Below, piece after piece: positions 2,864 through 45,511 of a stretch of DNA of 51,810 bases. Source of the stretch: Macrostomum lignano (taxonomy: Eukaryota). Within the stretch, counting starts at the first letter, position 1, and each line of letters opens with the position of its first letter. Below the pieces are notes generated by a model that worked only from the letters and a program-made list of their open reading frames with translations, searched no databases and was not told the DNA's origin. The stretch lies in contig NIVC01003011.1 in NCBI GenBank assembly GCA_002269645.1, forward strand, positions 1-51,810, written 5' to 3'. The position numbers were made by a program, and so were the translations under genes.

Positions 2864-4172
2864 CCCCCACCTTGTGACCCCTCGTAGTAATAAATAGTTT
2901 TGCTTCAGGGCGCCAGTCGATCCTGATTGTTATCTTCATAGATTGCAAGAAAGCATTAATTTCGACTCGGTCGTCAGGTCTGTGCTCCCAAATGTGCTCC
3001 GTGCGTACAGCGTGCCAGAGCAGCTGATTTCCGCCATCATGGCGATGTACCCTGATACGAAAGCTGCTGTTTCAACACCGGACGGCCTATCGGACTTCTT
3101 TGAGACATCCTCCAGAGTGCTTCAGGGAGATACGCTTGCGCCGTTTCTGTTCGTTCTGGTGCTTGACTCGGCGCTGCGGACCGCTCTTCCTACCAACGAC
3201 GATGGCTTTCTGTTGCGGCGACGCGAGGGTCGACGTCAACCGGAGAGGCGGCTCAGCGTGCTTGGCTACGACGACGATCTCGCCCCGTTGTCCTCAACTG
3301 TCAAGGGCGCCAAAGCGACAACTGGACAAGCTAGTTGCTGTTGCGGCGAGTCTCGGCCTGGTGGTCAACACGCAGAAGACCGTCGTGCTCTACGTGCCGG
3401 ACGACATCGAGGCTGCGATTTGGTGCCGAGGCGCTGATGAACAGGCGACAGAGCTTCCGCGTTGTCAGCAGTTCGTCTACCTCGACAATCTGGTTCCCGG
3501 TGTCCGCGAGGATTTGCGGCGTCGCCGCGGGCTTGCCTGGGCTGCCTTCCGCTCTGTGAGGGCAGTCCTGCAGTCCGAGGCCGTACCTGACCGCTAGAGG
3601 GCGGCGTTGTTCCAGGCGGTGGTCGAGACCGTCCTGCTGTACAACGCCGAGACCTGGACGCTGACGGAGTCGCTCGAGCAGCAAGTTGACGCGGCGCACG
3701 CTGGCCTGCTGCGCGCCGCCTTCAAGATCGGCTACGAGCGAGTGACCAACGCGGCTTTGTATCGCCGCACCAGCCTGGTCCGTCCAAGCGACCTGTTGCG
3801 CCGTCGGCGACTCCAGCTGGCAGGCCACATCATCCGAGCCGAGCCGTACTGCCCAGAGCCGCTGCAGGAGGTGCTGCTGCTAACGCTGCAGGCACCCTAC
3901 CGGCGGGGGCAGGCGCGCACTCGGCGTTTCGTCGACTGCCTGCTGGCTGACGCCGGCGCCCCGGATTCGGCCGGCGGCGTGGCGTTCGTTCGCGACCCGA
4001 CCTGGCCTTGAGGCGCGCCCTGTGATGCTAACTACGTATTCTGTTGTTGTTGTTCAGGGCGCCAAAATGAGTTCTAACAACACCGATTCTCAAAATAATG
4101 CACATCTATGAATTTAGTCATGTACATGTACATGTAGAATCATTGGCTTTGTCCCCCCCCCACCATAAAATC
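2864..4172 (-). mobile_element. MITE family A copy with a single seed unit, interrupted by an RTE insertion
   Basis: 2864-2915 and 4053-4172 are reverse-complement matches to the right and left arms of the element at 17498-18347. Only one CTCATTTTGGCGCC unit is present. Confidence 0.8.
2916..4052 (+). mobile_element. 5'-truncated, defective RTE-type non-LTR retrotransposon
   Basis: RT motifs IFIDCKKA.FDSV, VLQGDTLAPFLF, LGYDDDL and FVYL, then FQAVVETVLLYNAETWTL. Frameshifts and a TAG near 3596, a (GTT)n tail, and a 12-bp TSD TTCAGGGCGCCA (2904-2915, 4053-4064). Confidence 0.92.
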
Positions 4173-4220: not shown

Positions 4221-4434
4221 CTCTGCATTGCTTCAGTTCAACTGGGTGCCGCATTAGCTGGGGTAATTGAGGGTGTGTGTGTGTGTGTGGCGACCCCCCC
4301 ACACAGTCCTTGGACTGAACAGCCGTACGCAGCCTTCAAATGCACCGCGCAATAGCTGCGGCTGAGCTGTCGGTTGCACATCTGCATGCTCATTAGAGTA
4401 GGAGCAATCAATAATTACTTTTATTGTTATTATT
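4221..4434 (+). mobile_element. 5'-truncated copy of the tRNA-derived SINE
   Basis: High similarity to 5251-5417 (CTCTGCATTGCTTCAGTTCA ... GCTGAGCTGTCGGTTG) with an AT-rich tail. Confidence 0.85.
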
Positions 4435-4632: not shown

Positions 4633-10307
<5,675 letters not shown>

Positions 10308-15600: not shown

Positions 15601-18588
15601 GAGAGAGGAGAGGAGAGGAGAGGAGAGGAGAGAGGAGAGGAGAAGAGAGGAGAGAGGAGAGGAGAGGAGAGGAGAGAGGAGAGGAGAGGAGAGGAGAGGA
15701 GAGAGGAGAAGGAGAGAGGAGGGAAAGGAGGAGAAGGGAGAGGAAAGGGGAGAGGAGAGGAGAGGAGAGGAGAGAGGAGAGGAGAGGAGAGGAGAGGAGA
15801 GGAGAGAGGAGAGGAGAGGAGAGGAGAGAGGAGAGGAGAGGAGAAGAGAGGAGAGAGGAGAGGAGAGGAGAGGAGAGAGGAGAGGAGAGGAGAGGAGAGG
15901 AGAGAGGAGAAGGAGAGAGGAGGGAAAGGAGGAGAAGGGAGAGGAAAGGGGAGAGGAGAGGAGAGGAGAGGAGAGAGGAGAGGAGAGGAGAGGAGAGGAG
16001 AGGAGAGGAAAGGAGCGGAGAGGAGAGGAGAGGAGAGGAGAGGGGGAGATGAAATAGAAGAGGAGAAAGGAGAGAGGAGAGGAGAGAGGAGAAGGAGAGA
16101 GGAGGGAAGGGAGGAGAAGGGAGAGGAAAGGGGAGAGGAGAGGAGAGGAGAGGAGAGGAGAGGAGAGGAGAGGAGAGGAGAGGAGAGGAGAGGAGAGGAG
16201 AGGAGAGGAGAGGAGAGGAGAGGAGAGGAAAGGAGCGGAGAGGAGAGGAGAGGAGAGGAGAGGAGAGGAGAGGAGAGGGGGAGATGAAATAGAAGAGGAG
16301 AAAGGAGAGAGGAGAGGAGAGAGGAGAAGGAGAGAGGAGGGAAGGGAGGAGAAGGGAGAGGAAAGGGGAGAGGAGAGGAGAGGAGAGGAGAGGAGAGGAG
16401 AGGAGAGGAGAGGAGAGGAGAGGAAAGGAGAGGAAAGGAGAGGAGAGGAGAGGAGAGGAGAGGAGAGGAGAGGTGAGGAGAGAGGAGAGGAGAGGAGAGG
16501 AGAGGAGAGGTGAGGAGATTAGATGAGAAGAGAGAGGTGAGAGAAGAGAACTGATAAGGGACATAAACCTTGAGCGGACGGATTGCTATTGTGAAGCTTC
16601 AATTAGGACCCGCGGGCAGCAGTTTGCTGACTGCTGGCCTAGCATGACGGCAATTTACTCTCGTAAAAAAGTCACGAGGTTCGATCGCTCTCGCGGGCAC
16701 ACGTTGTTCTGCAGTTTATGTTTCGGAAAGCCTCAGACAAGTCGCGCGTGCGATTCACGAAGGCTAACACGAAGGTTACAAAGGCTAACACCTAAAGACT
16801 TCAAGGTGTACACTGCCTGAAAATGAGGGAGAAAGCCCGGGCCCCCTGTACACCCTGTGGTAGCGTGCTCAGCAGTCAGCGGAATTGGTACAACTGCTTG
16901 TTACTTTGTTGGTTTGCCCTTGGTCTGCTCAAATCTGACACTTTGAGTTGCTAGTTGACTCACCGCTGATTAACCTCAACAATCCATCGCGTGTTGACAT
17001 CCGTTGGAAGTTCGGGTTGCACAGACAACACCTTGGCGCCGAAGATGATGCGGCTGGTCAGCTGGAACTGCTCAGCGTACAGGCGCAGGTACAGCAGCAC
17101 CCAGCGGTTGTGCATGAAGGTTGGCGCACCCGCTGGTACAGGGAAATCGCTGAAACACGACATCTGCTTGCTGCTGATCATGGTGCAGCTAGAGTAGACG
17201 GATGCGTTTGATGTCGGATTTTTCGTGTTCCAGATTCCGCCTGATATTAATATTGATGTATGATTTGATGAAGCGCATGAAACAATTACCATAAAAGCTA
17301 TTTACATTAAAAGTAAACATAAGATATCATGCCTGACTTAAAACACCACCTACACTTTTCAAACAAGGAATGCTTAAGGAGGCTGCATTGTATTAAGCAT
17401 GCTCTAAAGAGCACAGACTCTACATTCTCTAGATTTGTCTCTCCAGAATTCGCTAATGTGTTGAGCGGCCTTCTCCGAGGCCACGAATTCCCCGGGACAG
17501 GGGCGTCGCCATGGATTTTATCGTGGGTGGGACAAAGCCAAGAATTCCACATATACATGTACAGGACTAAATTCCTACATGTACATTATTGTAAGAATCA
17601 GTGTTGTCAGCGCTCATTTTGGCGCCGCAGGCACTCATTTTGTCGCCGCAGGCACTCATTTTAGCGCCGCAGGCACTCATTTTGTCACCGCAGGCACTCA
17701 TTTTGTCGCCGCAGGCACTCATTTTAGCGCCGCAGGCACTCATTTTGTCACCGCAGGCACTCATTTTGTCGCCGCAGGCACTCATTTTAGCGCCGCAGGC
17801 ACTCATTTTAGCGCCGCAGGCACTCATTTTAGCGCCGCAGGCACTCATTTTAGCGCCGCAGGCACTCATTTTGTCGCCGCAGGCACTCATTTTAGCGCCA
17901 CAGGCACTCATTTTGTCGCCGCAGGCACTCATTTTAGCGCCGCAGGCACTCATTTTGTCGCCGCAGGCACTCATTTTGTCGCCGCAGGCACTCATTTTAG
18001 CGCCACAGGCACTCATTTTGTCGCCGCAGGCACTCATTTTAGCGCCGCAGGCACTCATTTTGTCGCCGCAGGCACTCATTTTAGCGCCACAGGCACTCAT
18101 TTTAGCGCCGCAGGCACTCATTTTGTCGCCGCAGGCACTCATTTTAGCGCCGCAGGCACTCATTTTAGCGCCGCAGGCACTCATTTTAGCGCCGCAGGCA
18201 CTATATTTTGTCGCCCTGAAGCAAAATTATTGATTTCCATAACGGGTCACAAGGCGGGGTGGGGGGGGGTACAAAGGACAAAGGAGGGGACAAAGGGGAC
18301 AAAGGATTGGCATGTCCCACCCTGTCCCCCCGGTGGCGACGCCCCTGCCTCGGGGTTAGGGCCACAGACACTTAAGAGCAGCAGAAGCTACAGTCTATGG
18401 TCTCAACCCCGGTGTTTTGGGCTTTAGCCATGCAGCTGAAGTGAACCAGTGAACGCATGATGCAAACTGATCTTACCAATATCGTCGCTAAGCTCAAAGC
18501 AGACACAATCGAGGCCCTCTTCTAAGCAGCTTTTGATGCTCGCCAAGCCGCTGGGACCTGCTCCGATTATGCAGACACATTTGCTCAT
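12658..18588 (-). CDS. FMO: Flavin-containing monooxygenase, ~547 aa, 6 exons
   Basis: Exons 18588-18477, 17240-16964, 15275-14829, 13938-13650, 13541-13356 and 12990-12658, all GT-AG and phase-consistent (1,2,2,0,0), 1644 nt in total. FAD motif IGAGPSG, FMO motif [16 protein letters not shown] motif VVGLGNSG, then FATGY, EAQARW and a hydrophobic C-terminal anchor. Confidence 0.95.
14020..14690. repeat. 18-bp minisatellite (CTCTTGTGACTCTCCTGC), ~36 copies; FMO intron 3
   Basis: Direct inspection; variant units cluster toward the 3' end. Confidence 0.96.
15320..16636 (+). mobile_element. hAT-type MITE family B inflated by a ~1.15-kb (GAGAG)n-like tract; FMO intron 2
   Basis: Left TIR CAGGGGTCGGTCAACT, degenerate right TIR AGTTTGCTGACTGCTG, TSD GCCTAGGA / GCCTAGCA (7/8), same internal landmarks as 10443-10856. 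Confidence 0.85.
17498..18347 (+). mobile_element. hAT-type MITE family A containing ~28 copies of a 21-bp unit; FMO intron 1
   Basis: Perfect 14-bp TIRs CAGGGGCGTCGCCA (17498-17511) / TGGCGACGCCCCTG (18334-18347). Flanks CCCCGGGA / CCTCGGGG (6/8). Unit GCAGGCACTCATTTTAGCGCC. Confidence 0.9.
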
Positions 18589-19124
18589 GTTTGTAAAAAG
18601 ATATTTAAAGAACAGCTGGCTCTTTCGTCTCGTATAGCTAGCTCTATTTTTCCGCTTTAACCTTCACATATATACGTAATGGTATAAATAAATGTGAAGT
18701 CTTTCGCTTACAGAATTTCATTGTTGTTAGCTCGTATCTTACGTAATATCAGTAGATTACATAAGCTAAATGCAATATAGTTTACACCCAGCTGTGTTCT
18801 ACAGTGCACCCCGACTGGGCTCGTGCTATACTCCATTATTATCAAGTCGCATGGCGCCTTGAGTGACACTTCTTTGCTTAAGAACGTTTAGTTAAAATCA
18901 CAGAAATGAATATAATTACATTTGTATACGAGCGTACACAGGTGGACTTAGTGCGCGTTAATATACACACCGGCCAGAAAAGCTTATAGGTGTCCCTGAC
19001 AAATCAAAGCATGATTTCTTTCTTTCTTTTCAGGATCTTTCTCGACCAAAGGGTCTGTCAACTTAAGCTCATAAAGTGGAGCCCGAGTAACCTATGTACA
19101 CAAATGATACATCATTCTGCTCAC

Positions 19125-19365
19125 AACAAACAACAATAACAACAAAATACGCGACCCCGCAAGCAAAGTCAGTTATAAAGCAGGGCGCGTCAGATGGCGC
19201 GCCGCAGAGCCTGGAAGCGAACGAAGTCCGCTCCGTTGGCAGTGTCGGGCGCCCCAGCGTCGCACAGCAGGCAGTCCACGTATCGACAGGATCGGGCCTG
19301 ACCCCGCCTGAACGGGCCCTGCAAGGTGAACAGCAGGACGTCCTGGACGGGATAAGTAGAGACTC
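19125..19365 (-). mobile_element. 3' fragment of a second, diverged RTE element
   Basis: PVQDVLLFTLQGPFRRGQARSCRYVDCLL aligns with PLQEVLLLTLQAPYRRGQARTRRFVDCLL at ~3860-3950. Has a (GTT)-like tail. Confidence 0.85.
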
Positions 19366-20023
19366 CTTTAATTAATCTCTTGCTTGTTTTCCTATCCCAA
19401 GTCCAATTTTTGTCGCTTTGTTGCCAAATCCAACTTCCTGGTGTCACTGTGAACAGAATGACGTATCAATTGTGTACATATATTACTCGGGCTCCACTTT
19501 ATGAACTTAAGTTGACAGGCCATTTGTCTATGGAAAAACAATGCAGCGTTAATTTGCGCTCTCTAGAGATGCTCTATAGGGATAAAACGGCCTCTCCAGC
19601 TCATTCCTCAAGAATATCGAGTGATGTCGATCCAGTTGTCCATGAATCGATATATATCTATAGCTTGGCAACCGTGGCGCCGACTGCTGCCAGTAGTATC
19701 GAATGCATATCGACTACGGAATGCCTCTTGGCTCTACGTCTGACATTCTGACTTGTGACTTGAGTTGCTGTAGTGTTGGAACCAAAGCAGCTGGTTCGAT
19801 TCCTTTAGAAAGTCAGGACCGCTGTACAATCTGTGTGAGCGTGTGTGAGGGCGTTTCCGTTGTACAGTATCGGCATTACAGTGTCCACAGCTCACCTGTG
19901 AATATGTAGCTTATCGATATATGGTCAAAATTTTCCCAATAGAAAAAAATCTTAGTGGCAGTCATGGTGAATAGAAAAAGAAGAAAGAAACGGAAGGAAT
20001 TGTACTCTTGTTCTCTTTTAAAA

Positions 20024-20900
20024 CGCCATGTCACCATGGATTTTATGACGGGGGGACAAAGCCCTCAATTCAACATGTACATGACTAAATTCCTACCTGT
20101 CCATTATTTTGAGAATCTGTGTTGTCAGCGCTCATTTTAGCGCAGCAGGCACTCATTTTAGCGCCGCAGGCACTCGTTTTGGCGCCGCAGACACTCATTC
20201 TGGCGCCGTAGGCACTCACTTTGGCGCCGCACGCACTCATTTTAGCGCCACAGGCACTCATTTTAGCGCCACAGGCACCCACTTTTAGCGCCACAGGCAC
20301 TCATTTTAGCGCCACAGGCACTCATTTTAGCGCCGCAGGCACTCATTTTAGCGCTACAGGCACTCATTTTGGCACCGCAGGCACTCATTTTAGCGCCGCA
20401 GGCACTCATTTTAGCGCCACAGGTACTCATTTTAGCGCCGCAATCACTCATTTTAGCGCCGCAGGCACTCATTTTAGCGCCACAGGCACTCATTTTAGCG
20501 CCACAGGCACTCATTTTGGCGCCGCAGGCACTCATTTTAGCGCCACAGGCACTCATTCTAGCGCCGCAGGCACTCATTTTAGCGCCGCAGGCACTCATTT
20601 TAGCGCCGCAGGCACTCATTTTAGCGCCACAGGCACTCATTTTAGCGCCACAGGCACTCATTCTAGCGCCGCAGGCACTCATTTTAGCGCCACAGGCACT
20701 CATTTTAGCGCCGCAGGCACTCATTTTAGCGCCACAGGCACTCATTCTAGCGCCGCAGGCACTCATTTTAGCGCCGCAGGCACTCATTTTAGCGCCGCAG
20801 GCACTCATTTTAGCGCCGCAGGCACTCATTTTGGCGCCCTCAAGAAAAAAATTTTTGATTTCCACAACGCGTCGCAAGGTGGGGTGGTGGGACAAAGCAT
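20024..20900 (+). mobile_element. MITE family A copy with degraded termini and ~33 copies of the 21-bp unit
   Basis: CATGGATTTTAT..GGGACAAAGCC left arm and TTGATTTCC..AAC right arm match 17498-18347. Confidence 0.85.
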
Positions 20901-21626
20901 TGTCGTGTCCTGTCCATAGTTTTCACGAGCTACTGGAGGTTCCGCTCGCAACTATCTGACAGGGAAACGAGGGTTCTACTTAGCTTCAAAACTTCAACTT
21001 AATCTCGCATTGAAACGTACAACTTAAATCCTTGTTAATCAAAGGATCGTGCATTTCTCCAAACAAAGTTGCTTATTAGAATTGAAGCCTCCTGAATGTG
21101 AAAGCAGACGGGCCAGAGGCCACACTTAATCAGGTGACATGTTAGCTGCTAACGAAGCAGTTCACAAAGGGGAGGCTTTGAAACACGATCGACATTGGTT
21201 AACTAGCTAAGCAGACAAATTGCGCTGCCACCTCCCTTTGCTTGTTCCAATTCAGCGAGGCGCTACCTGTAACTGAAGTTGAAACTCAAGCTGCAGCAAA
21301 TTGCAGAAATGACTCAAGAGATGAAGCTTCTCCTCAATCACAACCAGTATAGCTACGGTGGTAGGGTTATCAATTCGAATTTTCTTTTTTCATCTTTTTT
21401 ACTTCTTGCATTCAAAACCTCTTAAGAATCCAAAATTAAAAGTCACACTTTTGTTATTCTGCAATCTGCATGTATATTAAAATTTGTATTTCTGTGTTTA
21501 AATTTCACTCTGGTTAATTTAGTCTACTTTCTATACATCGAATTTATTCACTCTAGTGCAATACTCTCGAGGTCACTCTAGTCTTGTACCTTAGGTCACT
21601 CTACTATAGTCACTCCACCTGGCTTA

Positions 21627-21880
21627 CTAGGGGAATTGCTGAGATGCCAAGGCTGAGAGGTCATAAGCTAAATGTAGCTTATTCACAAATGTTTATTACA
21701 TTCTTTGAACAATTTTACTCTGTGGACTCTATGGAACAATATGGTGATTTATTAAACTGAAAAAGGAATGCCTTCAAGAATATGTGCATACTTTCATTTT
21801 GAAGGATTCTCATAAAATAATTTTCATCTCTTATCTTTTTTGCTTATTGGGCGCGCGCCCTGAAGGGGGCACTAGATTGC
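21627..21880 (+). repeat. Dispersed element family D with a single 30-bp seed
   Basis: GGGGAATTGCTGAGATGCCAAGGCTGAGAGGT and downstream sequence match the 3' end of the 25630-26820 array and its flank to ~26910. Flanked by direct repeats TAGTCACTCCACCTGGCT. Confidence 0.65.
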
Positions 21881-22620: not shown

Positions 22621-23098
22621 TGCAAATCATCTTTTCTACTATATTCAGCAACCGTTTGTTCACCCCGAGCTCGATTTCATTCATTTGGTCGAATGGGAAC
22701 TTGGGAACTCGTGTACGAAAACTGGACTGGGATTTTTTGCGATTTGCGTTCTACACACTGCCTGACAGAGATGTCGAGAGAGTCAGGGCCGCTGTTACAC
22801 CCTGCTCAGACCGTTCAGGTGTCAGTGGAAATAAATCCTAACAAATCCAATGGTCAATAAATCATAAATCAATGTTAGATACAATCAGGTATATGATTAC
22901 TTAGTCTCAACTTATTCCGACTAATTCGATCATTAAATTGCAATATGTTTGTTTAGCCGTGAGACTGGGTGCAGACAGCTGATTGGCTGCAGTCCCAACT
23001 GGATTTGATGCTCATTTAAAAATAACTCAAATCCAATAAAATTCCCCAGGTGAAATATTTGCTTGTCTTCAACGAAACGAACTATCAGCGAAATTAAA

Positions 23099-23425
23099 AT
23101 GAGCAGCAGAATCACGGCGATAATCCTGCTTGCCGCCATCCTGACAGTAATTGGCCCAACGGACACCGTCGCCCGCTTCCCCCTAGGGAACTCCATAAAT
23201 ATCGGCAATTCTAATCAGTCTCAATCTGAACGCGTGTTAACTGTTATCGCATCAGTTTTTGGAGGATTGCTGCTCTGCATAATGGCTATCACTTTGCCGA
23301 TCTGCGTAGCAAGGATGTCGCACCGCTGCTGCTGTTGCTGCTGCTGCTTCAGCAGGCAAAGCGCACCTGCGTCTCAGCAGATCAGGCACAACCCTATGGT
23401 TCCAATGGCTGAGCTGGGCGTGTAG
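23099..23425 (+). CDS. Small single-pass Cys-rich membrane protein, paralog 1 (108 aa)
   Basis: ATG at 23099, hydrophobic leader, TM segment, CCCCCCC, C-terminus PMVPMAELGV. The paralog at 27148 shares start context and C-terminus. Confidence 0.75.
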   Translation: MSSRITAIILLAAILTVIGPTDTVARFPLGNSINIGNSNQSQSERVLTVIASVFGGLLLCIMAITLPICVARMSHRCCCCCCCFSRQSAPASQQIRHNPMVPMAELGV

Positions 23426-25629: not shown

Positions 25630-26820
25630 GCTAAGATGTCAATTCTGCTGGGGGAAATTGCTGAGATGTCAAAGTTTATGGGGGTAAATAGCTGAGATGT
25701 CAAGGCTTACGGGAGGTGCTGGAATTTCAATTCTGACGAGGGAAATTGCTGAGATGTCAAGGCTTACAGGGGGAATTGCTCAGATGTCAAGGCTTACAGG
25801 GAAAATTGCTGAGATGTCAAGGCTTACAGGGGGAATTGCTGAGATGTCAAGGCTTACAGATGGAATTGCTGAGATGTCAAGGCTTACAGATGGAATTGCT
25901 GAGATGTCAAGGCTTACAGGGGGAATTGCTCAGATGTCAAGGCTTACAGGGAAAATTGCTGAGATGTCAAGGCTTACAGGGGGAATTGCTGAGATGTCAA
26001 CAAGGCTTACAGGGAGAGTTGCTGAGATGTCAAGGCTTACAGGGAGAGTTGCTGAGATGTCAAGGCTTACAGGGGGGGAATTGCTGAGATGTCAAGGCTT
26101 ACAGGGAGAGTTGCTGAGATGTCAAAGCTTACAGGGGGGGAATTGCTGAGATGTCAAGGCTTACAGGGAGAGTTGCTGAGATGTCAAAGCTTACAGGGGG
26201 GGGAATCGCTGAGATGTCAAGGCTTACAGGGAGAGTTGCTGAGATGTCAAAGCTTACAGGGGGGGGGAATTGCTGAGATGTCAAGGCTTACAGGGAGAGT
26301 TGCTGAGATGTCAAGGCTTACAGGGGGAATTGCTGAGATGTCAAGGCTTACAGATGGAATTGCTGAGATGTCAAGGCTTACAGATGGAATTGCTGAGATG
26401 TCAAGGCTTACAGGGGGAATTGCTCAGATGTCAAGGCTTACAGGGAAAATTGCTGAGATGTCAAGGCTTACAGGGGGAATTGCTGAGATGTCAACAAGGC
26501 TTACAGGGAGAGTTGCTGAGATGTCAAGGCTTACAGGGAGAGTTGCTGAGATGTCAAGGCTTACAGGGGGGGAATTGCTGAGATGTCAAGGCTTACAGGG
26601 AGAGTTGCTGAGATGTCAAAGCTTACAGGGGGGGGAATTGCTGAGATGTCAAGGCTTACAGGGAGAGTTGCTGAGATGTCAAAGCTTACAGGGGGGGGGG
26701 AATCGCTGAGATGTCAAGGCTTACAGGGAGAGTTGCTGAGATGTCAAAGCTTACAGGGGGGGGGAATTGCTGAGATGTCAAGGCTTACAGGGAGAGTTGC
26801 TGAGATGTCAAGGCTGTGAG
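25630..26820 (+). repeat. 30-bp minisatellite (GGAATTGCTGAGATGTCAAGGCTTACAGGG), ~38 copies, family D
   Basis: Period ~30 with a variable G-run. Higher-order duplication is visible (AACAAGG variant at ~25998 and ~26493). Confidence 0.96.
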
Positions 26821-27147
26821 GTAAGCATGCAGCTGCAGAAATAGTTTACTCAAAAAAATTTATTACTTTTTTGTTGGCTCCCTATTGGGAGGGGGCGCTG
26901 GTTACTAGTATGAGTTTATAGATATTGACGTAGGTATAGATATAGATATAGATCCTAACGATAGATATTGCTAATCAAACGGCAATAAAGCATCTCCATT
27001 CGGCTGGCAATGAGTACAGGTGCTCATGGTGCCTCCTGCTGATTGGCTGTGCGATCTACCATCAATTATGCTATAGAGCTGCGAAATTTCTCGAGGCCAA
27101 ATCTTCCAATTGTCACCAATAGAGCACAAATTACCAGCGAAATTGAA

Positions 27148-27483
27148 ATGAGCAACAGAATCCCAGAGATAAGAGCCGTAATCCTGCTGACCGCCATCCT
27201 GACGGTTGGCTCAGAAAAGACTTTCGTCAGTGTTCTGCCGCCGATTAAAATCGACACACCTCAGAGCGCCGAAGCGGAGCAGCGTTTTTATGTCAACATA
27301 TTAATTGCAGTTGCAATTATTCTTGGACTGCTTGGCTTCTACATTTTGGCTACCTACCTGCTAACCTGCTGCTGCTGCAGGCAAAGCAGCTCTGAGGCAA
27401 GGAGAAACCGACAGAACGGTGTGGTTATCAATAAAAACGATTGGACTGTTCCCATGGTTCCAATGGCTGAGCTGGGTGTGTGA
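27148..27483 (+). CDS. Small single-pass Cys-rich membrane protein, paralog 2 (111 aa)
   Basis: ATG at 27148, leader AVILLTAILTV similar to paralog 1 AIILLAAILTV, TM, CCCC, C-terminus VPMVPMAELGV. Confidence 0.75.
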   Translation: MSNRIPEIRAVILLTAILTVGSEKTFVSVLPPIKIDTPQSAEAEQRFYVNILIAVAIILGLLGFYILATYLLTCCCCRQSSSEARRNRQNGVVINKNDWTVPMVPMAELGV

Positions 27484-27810
27484 CGTGCGGCCAGCGTCAG
27501 CTTAGAGTTCGCTATATATTTTATCAATTCTTAGTGACTACGTGTTGAACTAAGGTTTTAAAAAGTAAATACACCGAGCACTGCTGCAACTACAGTACAG
27601 CTATAGATGCACTCTTAAACAAAGCATGATCCTGTCTGAGCTCCGTCGGAAATTTAGAGTATGAGTCAACCTTTTTTGTGCTTATTATAACTAGCTGGCG
27701 TTCAAATGAATGACATTACCCCGGTATATACACGTATGTTGTATTGTAGGATATGTACTTTTCATTAGCAAGTCAACAAGTTCAATAGTATTTATATGTA
27801 AATGTCTCTT

Positions 27811-27922
27811 TTTGGGGCTCCCCTGTCTCTTGATTGGCGCCCCTGTCTCTTAATTGGCGCCCGGCCTTGTCTCTGGATTGGCGCCCCAGCTACCCCATAT
27901 CTTTTAGGCCGGTGGATGCTAC
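27811..27922 (-). repeat. Family C element with only ~3 units of the 20-bp seed
   Basis: Reverse complement GTAGCATCCACCGGCCT...AAGAGACAGGGGCGCC matches the head and unit of 5861-7110. Confidence 0.8.
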
Positions 27923-28956
27923 TTCTACTACATGTAGGTGTCAAAATTTGAGCTCACGTGTCATTCGCTTACCAATCTTATTTAGTTTCTAGCACGGACT
28001 ACTTCAGTAGAAGGACGCGACACGGGCAAAGCGTGCAAATTTTATTGGAGGCTGAATATTCAATTTTATGTAGTCCGACTTCAGAAACACCGAAGTATAG
28101 TTTTTTCACAGGATGCACATTACTTGTCCTTGTTGATGTGAGATATGTAATGTATGATTAAAACGATGCAGAAACCTTAGAAATTAGTTTCAAGCGACGA
28201 GAACTAGCTTTTGTCTGGTGAGTTTCGAAGTGCGACAACTATATGGCATAAATATGGCTCTTCACTTTGATAGTTATAGCACCTACTTTAAACGATGCTT
28301 CAGTACACGCCGTTCATTGTAACCGTGCAGCAAACCTTTAATCTGGGCGTACGAAAAACCTATTGCAGACGTACAGGTATAAATACCACCGGTTCTGTGC
28401 CCATCGCATCGGATAAATAGAATCAAAAGACGAAATAAGACAAAAGATTTTGAGAATAAGAATCTTAAGTTTTAAGTTTATAAGTAAGTTAAGGCCTACA
28501 AATGTTACAATGATTAGGGCTTACAATTGTTAAAATAATCTAAAAATTAGAAAACTGGTGCCTAATTGTGTGCCACTAGTGTGCCTTATGCATTGTATAG
28601 TTATAAACTATATGGGTTGAAGAGTAAAGGTTTTGCTTGTTTCATTGTACTTCTGTACTATTACTCATCATTTGCCTAGCTAATTTACCTGTCCCCCTCC
28701 GCGCCTCACGCCACCTTTTCTCACCGCCTCCATATTGATTTGTTATAACGTACATTGCAAGTCATGCACACTTACAACCCCCCCCCCCGCTAAAGCCTGT
28801 GTCAACCCCGCCATATATTATATTGAGAATAAATATACCTAGCTCAAGAGTAGACTGCGCGGACCCTTTTGATTTTGTTCTTCTACGATTGTCAATTGCG
28901 AGGCGAGCCGCCAAGTGCTGTGTTCTCAGTTCTTAAGAATCTCTTGTTAACATTTT

Positions 28957-28974
28957 TGGTAGCAGAGCGTGGTT
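28957..28974 (+). promoter_or_regulatory. Primer-binding site complementary to initiator tRNA-Met
   Basis: TGGTAGCAGAGCGTGGTT, 4 nt after the 5' LTR, matches the reverse complement of the animal tRNAi-Met 3' end (...CUCUGCUACCA). Confidence 0.8.
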
Positions 28975-28981
28975 CAGGTAA

Positions 28982-31132
28982 ATGGCCAGCCACGAATCGA
29001 ATCAGCAGCAGACTGGCTGCTCAGAAGATGAAGAAGAAAAAGAGATCAGCACTGAGGAGCGGCTTCGCATCGAACAGTTTCGACGAGTGAAGGCAAGAAC
29101 GAAGTCTGCAGGAACTAGGAGTCGAAACCGTCTGGTACTGTTGCTACAGAGCGACACCGATCATGAAGCGATCCAGCAAGCGTGCGATGCAGCCACTGCA
29201 GCACACGAAGAGTGCGTGAAGCTGCTTGACGAATTCTATGATGAGCTCCTTCAGCAAGAAGCCACAGAAGAAGCTCGAGACAAACTTCTGGACGAGCTGG
29301 ATCAAGTGGAGCAGCAGTTTCAAGACACTGTGAAATGTGTCACTCAATTCATCACTGCTCATCAGACTGCCGTGACAGCTGCGCCTGCGGCGACTGCCGT
29401 GACAGCTGCGCCTGCGGCGACTGCCGCGACTGCCGCGACTGCGGCTACGGCCATGCCGGTTGTGAGTGCCAGTAGTATTGATGACTCTGTAAGTGAGGCG
29501 GGCCATTCTCAGACTAGCAGCGGTGAAGCCGAGTTAGCAAAGGATCTTTGGAAGATGCTTCGGCGTGTAGAGATCCCAAAGTTCGGCGGCGAAAAGCAGC
29601 AGTACGAATCTTGGAAAGCCGCCTTTACTGCTTGTATTGATAGAGCTCCTGCCACGCCGGAGTTCAAATTGCTTCAACTCCGTCAATATCTTCAAGGGCC
29701 GGCTTTGAAATTAGTCGAACATCTGGGTCACTCTGCCGCTGCTTACGAGGCTGCCAAAGACAGATTGGAACGCGAATTCGGGGGCAGCCGCCGACGTATC
29801 GCTCTGTATCTTGAAGAGCTCGATAACTTTCCACCCATCCGCTCCACCAATGCAAAAGAGCTTAAGCAATTCTCTAATCTGTTAGATGTCGCAGTTGTAA
29901 ATCTCGAAGAGTCTGGTAAGGTCTCAGAATTGACTGACGGGTTGTTGTACGCAAAGTTGCAGAAGAAGCTCCCTGAGCAGATGGTGGCGCGTTACCGGCG
30001 TTGGCTATTCGAAGGACATAGGCAAGAGAGCGTTAAGATGTTACGTGAGTGGGTGCTTATAGAAGCCGCTTTCCAGACAGAAGCCATGGAGATTGTGCAC
30101 GGTGTGACGAGTGAAGAGAAGGTTAAGAAGGAGACGCGGTCCAAAACGTTTCTTGCAGATCATCAACAAGCGTCTCCGTCAAAATCTTGTATGCTGTGTC
30201 AAGATCAACATGAGCTGTGGAAGTGTCCAACATTTAGACAGCTGTCAATTGAAAATCGGTGGAAGGCTGCGCAAGATTCGAAATCATGCTTTTACTGCTT
30301 AGCTCGCAGTCATGCTGCTCGGATATGCCGTCATGGACGCCGATGTGGAATCGGTGAATGCAACAAGTTTCACCACCGCTTGCTGCACTCTGACGAGGCT
30401 GCAAAAACTGAGTCGAAGAAGAATTCTCCGGCCGAAGGAGGCAAAAAGAAGGCTGAGTCGGGTCGCAAAGGAGCCGCCGTAACTATGATGGCAGGAAATG
30501 GAAGTGCAACGTCGCTGCGAACAGTTCCAGTAGTTCTCAAGGCAGGTGGCCGTGTAGTGAAGGTGAACGCACTGTTGGACGACGCGAGTACAAGGACGTA
30601 TGTGAATGCAGAAATTGCTGAAGCTCTGGGACTGGAGGGCAATGTGGAGCGAGTGAAAGTGAACGTTTTGAACGGACAGACAGAGACATTGTTGACAGCT
30701 CCGGTTACGATGACGCTCGAAAGTGTAGATGGAAGTCTGAGTCGTCCGATCACGGCATTCACGACAGACAGCGTCACCGGGAAGCTGAAGGCCACGGATT
30801 GGCAGACGACAGCAGTGGATTGGAAACATCTGGAGCGTATTCCATTTCCTCAGCTCCATGCGCCGCATCTCATAGACCTGTTGATAGGAGTGGATCATGC
30901 GGAGTTACATGTGTCCTACCGAGAAGTTCGCGGTGGCCCTGGGGAGCCACAGGCACGTTTGACTCCCCTTGGATGGACAGGTGTGGGTCCAGTAGAACAG
31001 ATTCAGCATCAGACAAACTTGGCCAGCACCTTTTTCTGTCACCAGCGAGGAGATGCTGTCACCAGTGCTGCGCAAGTTCTGGGAGGTCGAAGAAATCCGG
31101 CCAGCTCAAGATCAAAATTGGACAGCGGATGA
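28982..31132 (+). CDS. BEL/Pao Gag-protease ORF (716 aa)
   Basis: DUF1759-like EIPKFGG..YESWKAAF, three Cys/His knuckles (CMLCQDQHELWKC, CFYCLARSHAARIC, CGIGECNKFHHRLLH), aspartic protease ALLDDAS. Confidence 0.9.
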   Translation: MASHESNQQQTGCSEDEEEKEISTEERLRIEQFRRVKARTKSAGTRSRNRLVLLLQSDTDHEAIQQACDAATAAHEECVKLLDEFYDELLQQEATEEARDKLLDELDQVEQQFQDTVKCVTQFITAHQTAVTAAPAATAVTAAPAATAATAATAATAMPVVSASSIDDSVSEAGHSQTSSGEAELAKDLWKMLRRVEIPKFGGEKQQYESWKAAFTACIDRAPATPEFKLLQLRQYLQGPALKLVEHLGHSAAAYEAAKDRLEREFGGSRRRIALYLEELDNFPPIRSTNAKELKQFSNLLDVAVVNLEESGKVSELTDGLLYAKLQKKLPEQMVARYRRWLFEGHRQESVKMLREWVLIEAAFQTEAMEIVHGVTSEEKVKKETRSKTFLADHQQASPSKSCMLCQDQHELWKCPTFRQLSIENRWKAAQDSKSCFYCLARSHAARICRHGRRCGIGECNKFHHRLLHSDEAAKTESKKNSPAEGGKKKAESGRKGAAVTMMAGNGSATSLRTVPVVLKAGGRVVKVNALLDDASTRTYVNAEIAEALGLEGNVERVKVNVLNGQTETLLTAPVTMTLESVDGSLSRPITAFTTDSVTGKLKATDWQTTAVDWKHLERIPFPQLHAPHLIDLLIGVDHAELHVSYREVRGGPGEPQARLTPLGWTGVGPVEQIQHQTNLASTFFCHQRGDAVTSAAQVLGGRRNPASSRSKLDSG

Positions 31133-32399
31133 GCAAGCTGTAGTCGAGCAAGCCAAGTCTTCATTAAAGCTAACAAACGGCCGATACCAGATGGGAATTC
31201 CGTGGAAGCCAGAGGCGAAAGTTCGCTCGAATAACTATGAGATGGCGATCATACAGCTTTGTAACACGGAGACTCGGTTGAAGAAGGATCTGGAGGTGGC
31301 AAAGCAATACCAAGCATGCCTAGAGCGATATGGGCAACAAGGCTACATTCGGCACGTTGCAGTAGAGGGGTTCACAGCCAGGTGTTTTCTGCCGCATTTT
31401 TTGATTATTCGATTCGACAAGCTGACGACAAAGGTTCGAATCGTCTTCGATGCCTCGGCGGGCGGGAACGAAAAGTCGTTAAACTCTCTGGTCTTCCCAG
31501 GGCCGAAGCTTCAGCGAGAATTGTTTGACGTTCTGCTTCGCTTCAGGAGAGATGCAGTGGCTGTGGCTTGTGACATCTCCGAGATGTACCTCCAGATCGA
31601 AATGGCGCCGGAGGACAGGCCGACGCATAGCTTTATATGCCGTGAGATGGACTCTAGCAAGCCTGTTGAAATTTTTGAGACCAAACGCATCGTTTTCGGA
31701 AACTCGAGCTCGCCGTTTCTTGCTCAGTTCGTAGTTCGTGAGCATGCGGAACGCCTGAAAGAAGAGCTGCCATTAGCTGCAGACGCTGTTCTCAACTCCA
31801 CCTATATGGACGATTGTTTAGATTCGGTCGGGTCAGAGGCTGAGGCGATCCAGCTGTTTCAAGAGTTGAAGACTCGCTGGGAGCGTGCAGGCATGGAATT
31901 GTTGAGCAGAGTGCCACTAGAAGATCGAGTAGCCGAAGTAACATTGGAAGGGACACCGATGCCATCCATAAAGACGCTTGGTGTAGAATGGAGAAGCGAT
32001 CGGAACAAGTGCACCTTTAAAGTCGACCAGCCGTTTGCTGCGAACCGCATCAGAGAGACCAAGTCTGTCACAGATCCGGACCAGTGGAGGTGTGCCAATG
32101 CTTTGTCTCGAGGAACTTCAGCGAAGCAGCTGACGGAGGTTGACAGCTGGTGGCATGGACAAAGGGTGACTGGTCGGAGCACAGTCGTTAGCATGAATGA
32201 GGAACGATCGGCGGTCAGACGATTAGACCCGACCATGGCGACCAGGTTCTCGAGCTCAAAGCGGCGCATCTGCATGCAAGGCGAGACAGCTCGATTCGCG
32301 ACCATCTGCTGGCTGCCGCGGAGAGACGGGTGCGAGTTGCAAAAGTGCAGCTGGTTGGCAAGGCCTCCGCGAGGCCAACTGCGAGGCTGCGTCCGCTAA
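31053..32399 (+). pseudogene. BEL/Pao reverse transcriptase, frameshifted and deleted
   Basis: LRKFWEVEE, FLPHF, KVRIVFDAS, DISEMYLQI, FGNSSSPF and YMDD, then abrupt jumps to RNase H-terminal remnants. No integrase motifs. Confidence 0.9.
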
Positions 32400-33777
32400 T
32401 CACGAAGGGAGGCTTTAGAACTGACTAGTTGAGGTTTTGGCCGAACTTTCTTTTGTGGCTTTTGAGAGCTTTGCTTCCCTGCGCATTAAATCCAGTTTGG
32501 TTCGATCGCATTGTGTTTTTTCACTTCTGCTGTCTATTTTTGGGAGTTTTTGTGTTTGTTTTTTGTGTCTCTTTTTTTGTTTGTTTTCTTTTTTTGTGTT
32601 TTTTGTGTTTTTTTGTGTTTTTTGCTTGTTTGGCGTTTGTTGCGAAGAGGTTTTGCATACTCTGTTCGGTTAGCTTTCCCATTTTTCAGCGTTTATCCCC
32701 TTTGCTCATTTCATCGCACTGTACGCTACATTTCAGGTTCAATCCCGTTTGCTAATTCAGTTCGAATATTTATCGCATCCCCGTGATTCGTTTACTAACC
32801 TAATTATTTGATCCTATTTTCACTTTGTCATTTTGTCGAGCGTATTGCATCCTAGCGATTTAACTTTTTTCCTGAAAAGTACGCGGTACTATAATAATTG
32901 AATGTTTTAATTTTAAGATCTTTGTTCGAGGTGCTCTTTGTTTTGTTGGCATGTGCTCATGCCAAGAAGGGAGGTATGGATTGAAGAGTAAAGGTTTTGC
33001 TTGTTTCATTGTACTTCTGTACTGTTACTCATCATTTGCCTAGCTAATTTACCTGCCCCCCTCCGCGCCTCACGCCACCTTTTCTCACCGCCTCCATATT
33101 GATTTGTTATAACGTACATTGCAAGTCATGCACACTTACAACCCCCCCCCCCGCTAAAGCCTGTGTCAACCCCGCCATATATTATATTGAGAATAAATAT
33201 ACCTAGCTCAAGAGTAGACTGCGCGGACCCTTTTGATTTTGTTCTTCTACGATTGTCAATTGCGAGGCGAGCCGCCAAGTGCTGTGTTCTCAGTTCTTAA
33301 GAATCTCTTGTTAACACTATAAATCTTGTAACATTAGAGGTAGAATACCTCTTTACCTCGCTGGGCAAGCTAGAATATCTTAGTCTAACTCTAAGTCTAG
33401 CTAGAGTATAGTATTGTTGTTTATTAGGTATCCAATTTAATTAAAAATAAAGTTTCTAAAATATACTTCCTTGAACTCAAAACAATGCAATAATACATAC
33501 TATCCATGGGCATAGTCAATAGGCCCTAGATAAGATAAAAGTCGGAAGTCTTGCATAGTCAGCCAGGCGTTAAATCTTTAAAGCAACTGAGCTACTTGGT
33601 AGCAAGAATTTGCTTTTACACTTGACATGATTTAGCTTACAGTCAGTTTTTTCGGCAATCTAGTTTTACCGCGATAATTTTTTTAAAAACTTTAATTGCG
33701 AGTTAGTTACGCGGTCTACATGCATAATATGTAAAATAGCTAGGGCTTATATAAATATTATACAGTAAGCTAGGGCC

Positions 33778-37570: not shown

Positions 37571-40500
37571 ATGTCCCAGTCGCGTTCTCGTTCGCTGTCG
37601 CGGTCTCCGCGTTCGCCGCGCCTGCTTGAACGCCAGGAACTTCAACGTCGCGGCAGCTTCAGCCGCAGTCGTAGCCGCAGTCCACTAGGCGCTGGCGCTG
37701 CAGTCTTGTCAGCTCCAACGCGATCCAGGCGTCTGCAGTCCAAAAAGGTTGCCATGTTGAATTTGCCCTACAGCATTGAGGTGCTACGATTGAAGAGTAT
37801 TGTTAGAGAGCGATTGGGCTTCACCGGCTACCTCACTCTGTTAGAAGAACAGGGCAGATTCTCCGGCATCGGCTACATGGACTTTAGAACATATGAAGGC
37901 GCTGAGGAAGCCATTCAACGATTGAACGGCATGGACATTGATGGGCGTAGGATCAAGGTAGACTGCTTGTGTTTATCAGCAACATGCTGTGGGGACTAGT
38001 GTTCTTTGTAGCCCAGTTTGACTGTCTATAGTGCCAATCTGACTGTCTATAGTGCCAATCTGACTGTCTATAGTGCCAATCTGACTGTCTATAGTGCCAA
38101 TCTGACTGTCTATAGTGCCAATCTGACTGTCTATAGTGCCAATCTGACTGTCTATAGTGCCAATCTGACTGTCTATAGTGACAATTTGACTGTCTATAGT
38201 GACAAGCTGACTGTCTATAGTGCCAATCTGACTGTCTATAGTGCCAATCTGACTGTCTATAGTGACAATCTGACTGTCTATAGTGACAATCTGACTGTCT
38301 ATAGTGCCAATCTGACTGTCTATAGTGCCAATCTGACTGTCTATAGTGCCAATCTGACTGTCTATAGTGACAATCTGACTGTCTATAGTGCCAATCTGAC
38401 TGTCTATAGTGCCAATCTGACTGTCTATAGTGACAAGCTGACTGTCTATAGTGACAATCTGACTGTCTATAGTGACAATTTGACTGTCTATAGTGACAAG
38501 CTGACTGTCTATAGTGCCAATCTGACTGTCTATAGTGCCAATCTGACTGTCTATAGTGACAATCTGACTGTCTATAGTGCCAATCTAACTGTCTATAGTG
38601 CCAATCTGACTGTCTATAGTGACAATCTGACTGTCTATAGTGACAATCTGACTGTCTATAGTGACAAGCTGACTGTCTATAGTGACAATCTGACTGTCTA
38701 TAGTGCCAATCTGACTGTCTATAGTGCCAATCTGACTGTCTATAGTGCCAATCTGACTGTCTATAGTGCCAATCTGACTGTCTATAGTGCCAATCTGACT
38801 GTCTATAGTGACAATTTGACTGTCTAGTGACAATCTGACTGTCTATAGTGACAATCTGACTGTCTATAGTGACAATCTGACTGTCTACAGTGACAACTTT
38901 CTATTTTCTATTAGTAATAATGTATCTATACTACTAACTGAACAGGTACGCGAAGAGGTGCCTAGCGATCGGGGACGACTAGAAAGAATGGAACGCGAAT
39001 CCGCCGCAGGTATCGGACGGGGAGGCGGAGGCGGAGGTGGCGGCAGGGGCAGGGACGGTGGATCCGGCTACAATCGAAGAAGCCCAGAAAGAGCCGACAG
39101 AGGATCTGGTGGCGGCAGCGGCGGCAGTGCTCAAGCTCTGCTCAATCAGCTGGGCATTCGAGGACCAATTAGTAATAGCGTGTTTGTCAGCAATTTGGAT
39201 TCGAGGTAAATTTATTAATTAATATTGTTAGCTTGATTCTGTAATATACTGTTACTGCCATTTTGATCTATTGTTTCCTTCCATTCACTGAGAGTCACTC
39301 TTGATCCGCCCCTATCCTGAAAGTCACTCCTAAACCGCCCTTTTCCCTGGGAGTCACTCCTGATCCACCATCCTCACTGAGAATCACTCCTGATCCGCCA
39401 TCTTGACTGAGAGTCACTCCTGATCCGCCATCTTCACTGAGAATCACTCCTGATCTGCCATCTTACTGAGAGTCACTCCTGATCCGCCATCCTCACTGAG
39501 AGTCACCCCTGATCCGCCATCTTGACTGAGAGTCACTCCTGATCTGCCATCCTCACTGAGAGTCACTCCTGATCCGCCATCTTCACTGAGAGTCACTCCT
39601 GATCCGCCATCTTCAATAAGATAAGAATCACTCCTGATTCGCCATCTTCACTGAGAGTCACTCCTGATCCGCCCTTTTCCCTGAAAGTCACTCCTAAACC
39701 GCCCTTTTCCCTGGGAGTCACCCCTGATCCGCCCCTCTGAGAGTTACTTCTGATCCGCATCCTCACTGAGAGTCACTCCTGATCCGCCATCCTCACTGAG
39801 AGTCACTCCTGATCCGCCATCCTCACTGAGAGTCACTCCTGATCCGCCATCCTCACTGAGAGTCACTCCTGATCCGCCATCCTCACTGAGAGTCACTCCT
39901 GATCCGCCATCCTCACTGAGAGTCACTCCTGATCCGCCATCCTCACTGAGAGTCACTCCTGATCCGCCATCCTCACTGAGAGTCACTCCTGATCCGCCAT
40001 CCTCACTGAGAGTCACTCCTGATCCGCAATCTTCACTGAGAGTCACTCCTGATCTGCCATCTTCACTGAGAGTCACTCCTGATCCGCCATCTTCAATAAG
40101 ATAAGAATCACTCCTGATTCGCCATCCTCACTGAGAGTCACTCCTGATCTGCCATCCTCACTGAGAGTCACTTCTGATCCGCCATCCTCACTGAGAATCA
40201 CCCCTGATCCGCATCCTCACTGAGAATCACTCCTGATCCACCCCCTCATGCGAGAATCGCTGCTATATCTTTAGCTTGATCCTAAGGTAAGTGGGATCTT
40301 GATTCCTTTAGCTTATTTTTTAAAGTAAACCGCACTAATTCAAACCTGCAGCGTGAACTGGCAGAAGCTCAAGGACGTGTTCCGCTTAGCCGGGCGGGTA
40401 GTGAAGGCTGACATCATCGGCGATCCTCGCAGCTCATCGGGCAAGGTGGCCGGCCTCGTTCAATTCGAGACCCCATTAGAAGCCGCTCAAGCGATCAGCA

Positions 40501-44614: not shown

Positions 44615-45103
44615 GAGGGCCCGCGGGCACATGCGGCTCTCTCATATCCCCTCTCCCTTTCTCTCTCCTCTCCTCTTCCCTCTCCTCATCTCTCCCTCCT
44701 CTCTCCTATCCTCTCATCTTGATCCCTTCTCCCCTCCCCTCTCACTCTCATCATCTCTCCTCTCCTCTCCACTCTCCCCTCCTTCCCTCTCCCCTCATCT
44801 CCTCTCTCCTCTTCTCTACCTTCTCCTCTCTCCCCTAATCTCCATTCTCGTCTCTCCCCTCCTCTCCCTTCTCTCTCCTATCCTCTCATCTCGATCCCTT
44901 CTCCCCTCTCCTCTCTCCCCTTCTCTCTCCCCTCCTCTCCCCTCTCTCCTCTCTCTCCCTTATCCTCGTCCTCTCCTCTCTCTCCCTTCCTCCCCTCTCC
45001 TCCTCTCCTGTCTCCGCTTTCATTCCCCCCTCCTCTCTCTTCTTTCTCTTGCCCGCAGTCATGCGCTATATTCTATATTTGGCCCTATGATCGCCGACCC
45101 CTG
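44615..45103 (-). mobile_element. hAT-type MITE family B, inverted, with a ~400-bp CT-rich tract
   Basis: Ends GCCGACCCCTG. The reverse complement shows GCATGACTGCGGG directly before the tract, as in the other copies. The other TIR is not evident. Confidence 0.8.
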
Positions 45104-45106
45104 TTA

Positions 45107-45511
45107 CGTTCTTTTTTCGTTCTAATTCGATAAAACTGCATTCGATTTCGGCAAACTGTCTTTCATTTTCGGCATCAGCTACGGCCGCACATCCAAACTG
45201 CATTCGAATTCGACAAACCGCGAGAACCGATTTCGGCAACTCGAGTTTCTATTTAGACAAACTGATATACAAACTCGGCAAACTGTATTAAAACTGCATT
45301 GGCGCTGTCGAAATTGAGCGCAGTTTGCCGAAATTGAAAATCAGTTTTTGGGTTTAGATGCGCTTTTATTTCCGTAGACAGTCTGTGGCACGAGGCGCTT
45401 GCTGCAGAAATTGAATGCAGTTTTGGATGTGCGGCCGTAGCTGATGCCGAAAATGAAAGACAGTTTGCCGAAATTCAATGCAGTTTTATCGAAATAGAAC
45501 GCAAAAAGGTG
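45107..45511. mobile_element. MITE with ~95-bp imperfect TIRs flanked by TA (Tc1/mariner-type)
   Basis: TTCGATAAAACTGCATT...CAGCTACGGCCGCACATCCAAA is inverted at 45415-45500. TA at 45105-45106 and 45512-45513. Confidence 0.8.

Follow-up and report, generated by a model that had tools for sequence, protein, structure and literature searches.

Miniature inverted-repeat elements with 21-bp minisatellite arrays in a contig of Macrostomum lignano

MITEs (miniature inverted-repeat transposable elements) with tandem repeats inside them have been described in bivalves (DTC84 of Donax trunculus, pearl and related elements) and in insects (Satovic and Plohl 2013, PMC3879986). Xstir in Xenopus and the minisatellites borne by transposable elements (TEs) in rice and mammals are further cases (review PMC6947457; PMC9659126), and a bacterial MITE with tandem repeats has also been reported (PMC4596501). 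Here we describe family A, a MITE family found in Macrostomum lignano contig NIVC01003011.1 (assembly GCA_002269645.1). The analysed stretch, positions 1 to 51,810 of the forward strand, is called the window in what follows. Four copies of family A, named A1 to A4, lie in it, and A1 and A2 hold long arrays of a 21-bp unit. The spread of MITE-borne tandem repeats and their local expansion are already well documented, and family A is the same phenomenon in a new genome; a full-text literature search returned nothing linking Macrostomum to minisatellites or to MITE-borne repeats.

According to the bivalve report (PMC3879986), DTC84 and pearl resemble family A: they are short non-coding mobile elements in which conserved 'cassette' arms enclose an array whose copy number varies, the variants at the array edges are ordered or fixed, the junction between units is palindromic (in family A, GGCGCC or GCGC), and no two copies are alike. 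The same source describes them with no more than five copies of the repeat, a microsatellite beside the array and a target duplication of AA, whereas family A has 21-bp units in up to 34 copies, strictly terminal inverted repeats of 14 bp and a candidate 8-bp duplication. Family A falls outside the pearl/DTC84 group, since no microsatellite adjoins the array of A1 or A2, A1 is flanked by CCCCGGGA and CCTCGGGG without an AA duplication, and the inverted repeats are strictly terminal. The core repeats of DTC84/pearl-type elements are reportedly about 160 bp long, and elements of this type were later linked to Helitron-like elements.

Other described systems share part of this behaviour. In a MITE of another host, tandem repeats of a different length and sequence are likewise dispersed with the element and grow into longer arrays. 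The minisatellites derived from Alu and B1 and those that TEs propagate in rice (PMC6947457 and PMC9659126) begin with a duplication inside the TE, continue by slippage or unequal exchange and are dispersed by transposition, a course like that of family A; their carriers are mostly retroelements, whereas the carrier here is a class II element, with what appears to be one seeding event before dispersal. Tetris and the Drosophila satellites derived from foldback elements and Helitrons (PMC4079207) are alike in that the internal repeats of a DNA transposon build longer arrays. The Tetris-type repeats, however, are located in long inverted arms and gave rise to true satellites, while the arrays of family A are central, measure at most 0.7 kb and show no evidence of satellite scale.

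From the structure of the copies and of their arrays, we propose as a probable, though far from certain, explanation that family A is a MITE with a built-in 21-bp minisatellite, which already had several units before the copies dispersed and which was then subject to local turnover.

Anatomy of the family-A copies

A1 is the complete element of the family. It occupies 17498-18347 on the plus strand and measures 850 bp, of which about 261 bp are left when the array is reduced to a single unit. Its terminal inverted repeats (TIRs) are perfect over 14 of 14 bp (CAGGGGCGTCGCCA, at 17498-17511 and 18334-18347), and the element with collapsed array folds into a long hairpin (z = -4.09). Family A is non-coding, its long open reading frames (ORFs) being only read-throughs of the arrays. 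The octamers CCCCGGGA (17490-17497) and CCTCGGGG (18348-18355) form a candidate target-site duplication, matching at 6/8 positions in this single copy, a level for which a binomial estimate gives a chance of about 0.4%; the pair is near-palindromic and can also be aligned as an extension of the inverted repeats. These flanking 8 bp lie outside the element, because the homology of A4 stops exactly at ...CTG. In the right arm of A1, at 18270-18306 of the plus strand, an ACAAAGG-type motif is present four times, and the homologous site of A2 and A4 holds one GGGACAAAGC. This is a second, incipient site of tandem duplication within the same MITE.

Elements of the hAT superfamily have short TIRs starting with YARNG, and both ends of A1 read CAGGG..., which matches this pattern, a feature that is weak and not exclusive to hAT. 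With the CAG... terminus and the 6/8 candidate 8-bp duplication of one copy, a hAT-like nature of family A is plausible. The superfamily is inferred here, and the label is a reasonable one, short of an established membership.

The other copies are eroded or fragmentary. A2 (about 20030-20915, plus strand) has arms homologous to those of A1, A3 and A4, but its termini have decayed: the left end reads ..TGTCACCATGG against CGTCGCCATGG in A1, and at the right end the final 20 bp or so have diverged or are absent. A3, on the minus strand from 4172 down to 2861, has lost both termini and consists of a left arm (4172-4079), a sole unit (GTTAGAACTCATTTTGGCGCC, 4078-4058) and a right-arm remnant (2914-2861). 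Between unit and right arm it is split by a 1138-bp LINE-type retroelement fragment (2915-4052), which contains an ORF with a weak match to RVT_1 (E = 1.3e-4, under the Pfam cut-off). On its two sides the insert has perfect 11-bp copies of GGCGCCCTGAA (2904-2914 and 4053-4063), a duplication from which we can state that one unit directly abutted the right arm before the insertion. A4 is a right half only, on the minus strand from 5142 down to 5015, with an intact right terminus (CCGGTGGCGAAGCCACTG, 16/18 matches to A1) and one complete unit; this half copy abuts a repeat resembling a short interspersed element (SINE). A division of a whole copy by this SINE-like repeat was rejected, as no left arm is found past it. 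The sole complete unit of A4 has the array-type head GCAGGCA, which makes A4 a piece of a copy with several units, not a seed with one.

The original prediction of four copies of one MITE is overstated: the four belong to one family, but a complete element is seen only in A1. Of the two copies said to hold one unit, A3 has indeed a single unit, in an interrupted and truncated copy, while A4 is the half-element with an array-type unit.

The left-arm cores of A1 and A2 are 83.5% identical and their right arms about 83% over 75 bp; all three pairs among A1, A2 and A3 have left-arm identities between 83.5 and 86% over 85 sites, in a star-like pattern. The outer flanks of A1 and A2 are unrelated, as are the flanks across the four copies of the window. 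A1 and A2 are therefore separate insertions, and a segmental duplication was rejected on the same ground. Short, non-coding, bounded by TIRs and dispersed with unrelated flanks, family A has the features of a non-autonomous class II element, a MITE.

Some neighbouring repeats touch these copies. The SINE-like repeat is present twice, at 4281-4423 and 5284-5417 (the latter extending over about 5150-5420), with 84% identity over 143 bp, and each occurrence adjoins a family-A fragment. By eye, one of them has a tRNA-like head with a box-B-like motif, GGTTCGATTC, and a tail of (ATT)n; no tRNA was called there by ARAGORN or Rfam, and the tRNA (ARAGORN) and Rfam scans gave zero hits in the window. 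The retroelement fragment within A3 has a relative at 19126-19345 (71% identity over 129 bp), with tails of (GTT)n/(AAC)n type. Both fragments sit inside small inverted-repeat elements; the second one occupies the centre of a foldback element, between 79-bp arms (19047-19125 and 19448-19526) that have 90% identity.

Shared unit layout and growth in place

Tandem Repeats Finder (TRF) located the first 21-bp array at 17613-18202 (period 21, 28.1 copies, 92% matches, score 970) and the second at 20131-20838 (period 21, 33.7 copies, 91% matches, score 1162), with an identical consensus, CTCATTTTAGCGCCGCAGGCA. Counted in register starting at the left arm, the A1 array (17606-18215, plus strand) has 29 units and the A2 array (20124-20838, plus strand) has 34, so the long arrays of about 28 and 33 copies that had been predicted are real. 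The 16-mer CACTCATTTTRGCGCC occurs 63 times with at most two mismatches, against 0.08 expected. With head-to-tail units in the range of 10-100 bp, both arrays are minisatellites by definition.

The two arrays are built on the same plan. Both open with GTCAGCGCTCATTTT..., and the first unit is of seed type, GTCAGCGCTCATTTTGGCGCC in A1 and ...AGCGCA in A2. The units that follow carry the head GCAGGCA, at least three mutational steps away from the seed head GTCAGCG. In A1 there are seven unit types: the first unit is of seed type, the next 27 are array-type units of 21 bp, and the last is degenerate, odd in having 22 nt, and contains CTATATTTT; the A2 array has 15 types. The majority unit of A1, GCAGGCACTCATTTTAGCGCC, is present there in 14 copies, and the identical unit is present in A2 in 13 copies; a second unit type is also common to both.

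Above this plan, each array has a composition of its own. GTCGCC or GTCACC is found in 12/29 units of A1 and in none of A2, ATTCT in four units of A2 and in none of A1, and the ACAGG head in 13/34 units of A2 (twelve of 21 nt and the one of 22 nt) and 3/29 of A1. The diagnostic variants of the original prediction, GTCGCC-rich against GCCACA-rich, are thus correct for the first, which is limited to A1, and the ACAGG heads are mostly from A2; GCCACA, however, occurs three times in A1 and is not private to A2. Higher-order blocks follow the same division. In A1 the three-unit block GTCGCC-AGCGCC-GTCACC runs through about 2.7 repeats, and a five-unit (105-bp) block is duplicated; A2 has repeated ATTCT-containing blocks at its 3′ end, and the ACAGG and ATTCT variants recur in its 3′ half.

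Arrays of this unit are also present in translated form. Comparison of the array translation with representative proteins gave two genuine matches, the other hits being unrelated low-complexity repeats. Both are M. lignano gene models: UniRef A0A1I8I309 (P0050, 'RUN domain-containing'), with at least 12 array units at its start in a minus-strand frame, and UniRef A0A1I8IBS8 (P0182, 'TOG domain-containing'), with about 10 units. They contain translated family-A arrays as MSACGAK-type heptads, and these stretches are probably annotation artefacts. In P0050 the order is array-type unit (MSAC), seed-type unit (MSAD) and then left arm, as in A1 and A2, and a private variant, MSAYGAK, corresponds to a GTAGG head. 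P0182 has units with heads derived from the array type (MSDC, MSAC), the same start layout as far as the protein shows, and a three-unit block of its own, MSDCGAE-MSACGTK-MSDCGAK; its opening residues, KYS, translate CTATATTTT, from the same aberrant 22-nt last unit as in A1. AGCGCC as a marker common to the protein-level arrays was withdrawn, since GGCGCC and AGCGCC both give GAK. Exact-pattern scans with a 29-mer and a 21-mer found no external DNA copies in metagenome and bacterial/archaeal contigs.

A multi-unit array predates dispersal in this interpretation because A1, A2 and P0050 share the layout of seed-type followed by array-type units and the unit of A4 is array-type, and also because A1 and A2 share the majority unit and A1 and P0182 the odd 22-nt last unit. 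The evidence points to an array seeded once, before the dispersal of the array-bearing copies, which is the simplest reading of these sequences.

The opposite course was part of the original prediction: each copy would have arrived with a single 21-bp unit, and its long array would have developed after insertion, independently of the arrays elsewhere. It has in its favour the existence of the one-unit copy A3, the private variants and block structure of each array, and arrays that are younger than the arms. We nevertheless consider it improbable, since four to five loci repeat one two-type layout, in which the seed head is followed by GCAGGCA at a distance of at least three mutational steps, since A1 and A2 agree exactly in their majority unit, and since the aberrant last unit is common to A1 and the P0182 locus. 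In addition, A4 is a fragment with an array-type unit, and the one-unit state of A3 may be ancestral or equally a collapsed array, because an in-register deletion from the first to the last unit gives the same seed-type one-unit layout. What remains of the predicted independent post-insertion expansion is growth in place, indicated by the lack of singleton substitutions and by the private blocks; independent seeding from single units does not agree with the shared unit layout.

A part of the sharing involves neighbours. Between the A1 and A2 arrays, both on the plus strand, lie 1.7 kb, and the mean unit identity between them (0.913) is near that within arrays (0.922-0.935), as would be expected if their common units came from gene conversion or unequal exchange between neighbours and not from common descent. 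This origin seems equally improbable, given that GTCGCC (12 units) did not pass to A2 nor ATTCT to A1, and that the same unit layout is seen at unlinked M. lignano loci.

The age of the arrays can be compared with that of the arms. Private arm divergence is about 6% per copy for A1 and A2 (85 aligned sites), and arrays assumed static over that time should have accumulated singleton substitutions, about 33 over the 27 units of the A1 interior and about 21 over the 17 units that make up the A2 3′ half. None was observed in either part, and all variation there is recurrent and arranged in locus-specific blocks. The arrays were therefore amplified or homogenised in place after the arms diverged, and their growth or turnover after insertion is well supported. 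Private variants and block duplications are present in each of the four arrays (A1, A2, P0050 and P0182).

Within A2, all singleton substitutions are located in the 5′ half, beside the left arm, where the mean pairwise unit identity is 0.888; with a value of 0.950, the 3′ half is homogeneous. In both A2 and P0050, degeneration is strongest in the units closest to the left arm, a pattern suggestive of polar growth. A2 is presumably immobile, because its termini are lost, and the 3′ half of its array is nonetheless young. These results bear on a further alternative, that the arrays were transposed near their present length and have not changed since, their differences coming from distinct source elements. 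A1, with perfect TIRs around a 29-unit array, indicates that long-array copies could be mobile, and edge units are common to several loci. Of the explanations weighed here, we regard this as the least probable, in view of the 3′ half of A2 without singleton substitutions in a copy with lost termini, of the age gradient along the A2 and P0050 arrays, and of four arrays with four different interiors.

Unit numbers or parts of the arrays could also be assembly artefacts of a repeat-rich genome. This is very improbable, as the variant patterns are ordered and non-random, the junctions with both arms are clean, and arrays of the same unit occur in independent M. lignano gene models.

For a MITE with a built-in minisatellite, the following course can be proposed. 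The progenitor of the array-bearing copies would have contained several units: beside the left arm a fixed one of seed type, then those of array type, and against the right arm an edge unit. Transposition would have dispersed this cassette, which is prone to expansion, and the array interior would then turn over at every insertion site by replication slippage and/or unequal exchange, one to five units per step, producing the length (about 1 to 34 units), the variants and the higher-order blocks proper to each locus. The edge units, lying outside the turnover, would for that reason be conserved between loci and decay slowly. The anatomy of the copies, the unit layout common to the loci, the absence of singletons from the array interiors and the private block duplications are observed; the molecular mechanism of the turnover and the direction of change for A3 are inferred. 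Five units of single-stranded array fold no better than shuffles (z = +0.70); for want of any special folding, a slippage-prone hairpin was rejected and a hairpin-driven mechanism is not indicated. Nor was support found for an origin of the variants in CpG decay or methylation, the CpG observed/expected ratio outside the arrays being 0.92.

Several points weigh against the proposed history. The evidence comes from four DNA copies and two protein-level copies and is not genome-wide, and the star-like arm tree (83.5-86%, 85 sites) does not separate a subfamily structure. For A1 and A2, 1.7 kb apart in the same orientation, gene conversion could explain part of the sharing. Part of the private arm divergence may predate insertion and belong to the source elements, which weakens it as a yardstick of age. 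Position 16 of the unit (A/G) is unreadable from the proteins, where GCC and GCT both give Ala, so this marker is known for A1 and A2 only. As for the element itself, the target-site duplication is supported by one copy and by six of its eight positions, and the ORF list of the window, in which ORFs were not scanned individually, has no transposase-like ORF for an autonomous partner.

Other arrays and features of the window

Outside the arrays the window has a GC content of 44.6%, and 27.5% of it is tandem repeat according to TRF. A search for flanking inverted repeats was made for 19 arrays, comprising 16 minisatellites (period 12-30 bp) and three arrays with units of 4-5 bp. Inverted repeats above the null were found for A1 only and for none of the other 18; this test has low sensitivity, because it also misses A2, a known family member.

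Comparison of the unit consensus sequences linked three pairs of arrays in the window: those of family A, those of a second family, B, and an inverted pair at 39285-40239 and 40737-41538. Family B is formed by an array of 61 units of 20 bp, GGGGCGCCCACCAGGAGACA, at 5886-7109 on the plus strand, and by a short array of four units at 27803-27887 on the minus strand, whose unit is related to the former. About 65 bp of left flank are common to both arrays and the right flank is not shared; no flanking inverted repeat or TIR was found for this family. Beyond family A, only family B shows a dispersed flank in the window. For the general route of the original prediction, by which non-autonomous elements would seed the minisatellites of this genome, the window gives neither support nor refutation. 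The inverted pair, with 30-bp units at 39285-40239 and 25-bp units at 40737-41538, has a 13-14-nt core, TCACTCCTGA(T/C)CC, in opposite orientation; the two arrays flank an RRM-domain exon (40353-40688) and lie in the adjacent introns.

The palindrome GGCGCC is present in the units of families A and B. Five tandem arrays include 44/57 of its occurrences in the window, 43 in families A and B and one in the array at 7658-7878, and its density outside arrays is 0.31 per kb. As a 'core' common to both families it is a weak lead.

Another array, at 25651-26815 with a 30-bp unit, contains a 494-bp higher-order repeat present twice (25813-26815, 99% identity), which is a very recent block duplication. 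Two paralogous small ORFs, at 23063-23425 and 27043-27483, both end in ...PMVPMAELGV, have a hydrophobic segment and are each located downstream of a minisatellite; a partial flank homology near them (21621-21705 and 26782-26872) suggests an old local duplication. An imperfect palindrome of about 400 bp (45111-45508, 72.5% self-complementary) adjoins a CT-rich low-complexity tract at 44647-45048.

Among the genes of the window, flavin-monooxygenase-like exons are located at 13.6-17.3 kb on the minus strand and exons of an RRM protein between 37.4 and 42.0 kb. A database search with the flavin-monooxygenase exon gave two weak hits. The window also contains a BEL/Pao retrotransposon with long terminal repeats (LTRs), its pair of 342-bp LTRs, 99.1% identical, spanning 28611-33316. 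It has a gag-protease ORF of 716 aa, followed by a reverse-transcriptase ORF that looks disrupted. The N-terminus of its gag matches an M. lignano model with about 97% identity over the first 127 residues or so and 91% over 135; this model is annotated as UDP-N-acetylglucosamine diphosphorylase and is probably chimeric. Like the array translation, whose only close database matches are M. lignano proteins, and like the base composition and the tandem-repeat load, this match points to M. lignano or a very close relative.

Possible meaning for the Macrostomum genome

Simple and tandem repeats make up 15% of the M. lignano genome, hence its hard assembly (PMC5730564). There is a minor chance that MITE-borne, expansion-prone cassettes, from family A and possibly from family B, whose unit also contains GGCGCC, are a main source of this unusually high load, which in the window reaches 27.5%. 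If this were true, much of the minisatellite landscape would come from a few transposon families, with arrays seeded once and grown at thousands of sites.

Family A leaves the accepted view of the origin of tandem repeats from TEs unchanged. As a clean example it allows three proposed steps to be distinguished, namely a single seeding before dispersal, the spread by transposition, and a local turnover in which the edges stay fixed while the interior is fluid. Should this hold throughout the genome, it would help to explain the tandem-repeat richness and the difficult assembly of Macrostomum, and it would help to flag gene models that mistranslate minisatellite arrays, as is probably the case in the two UniRef entries described here.

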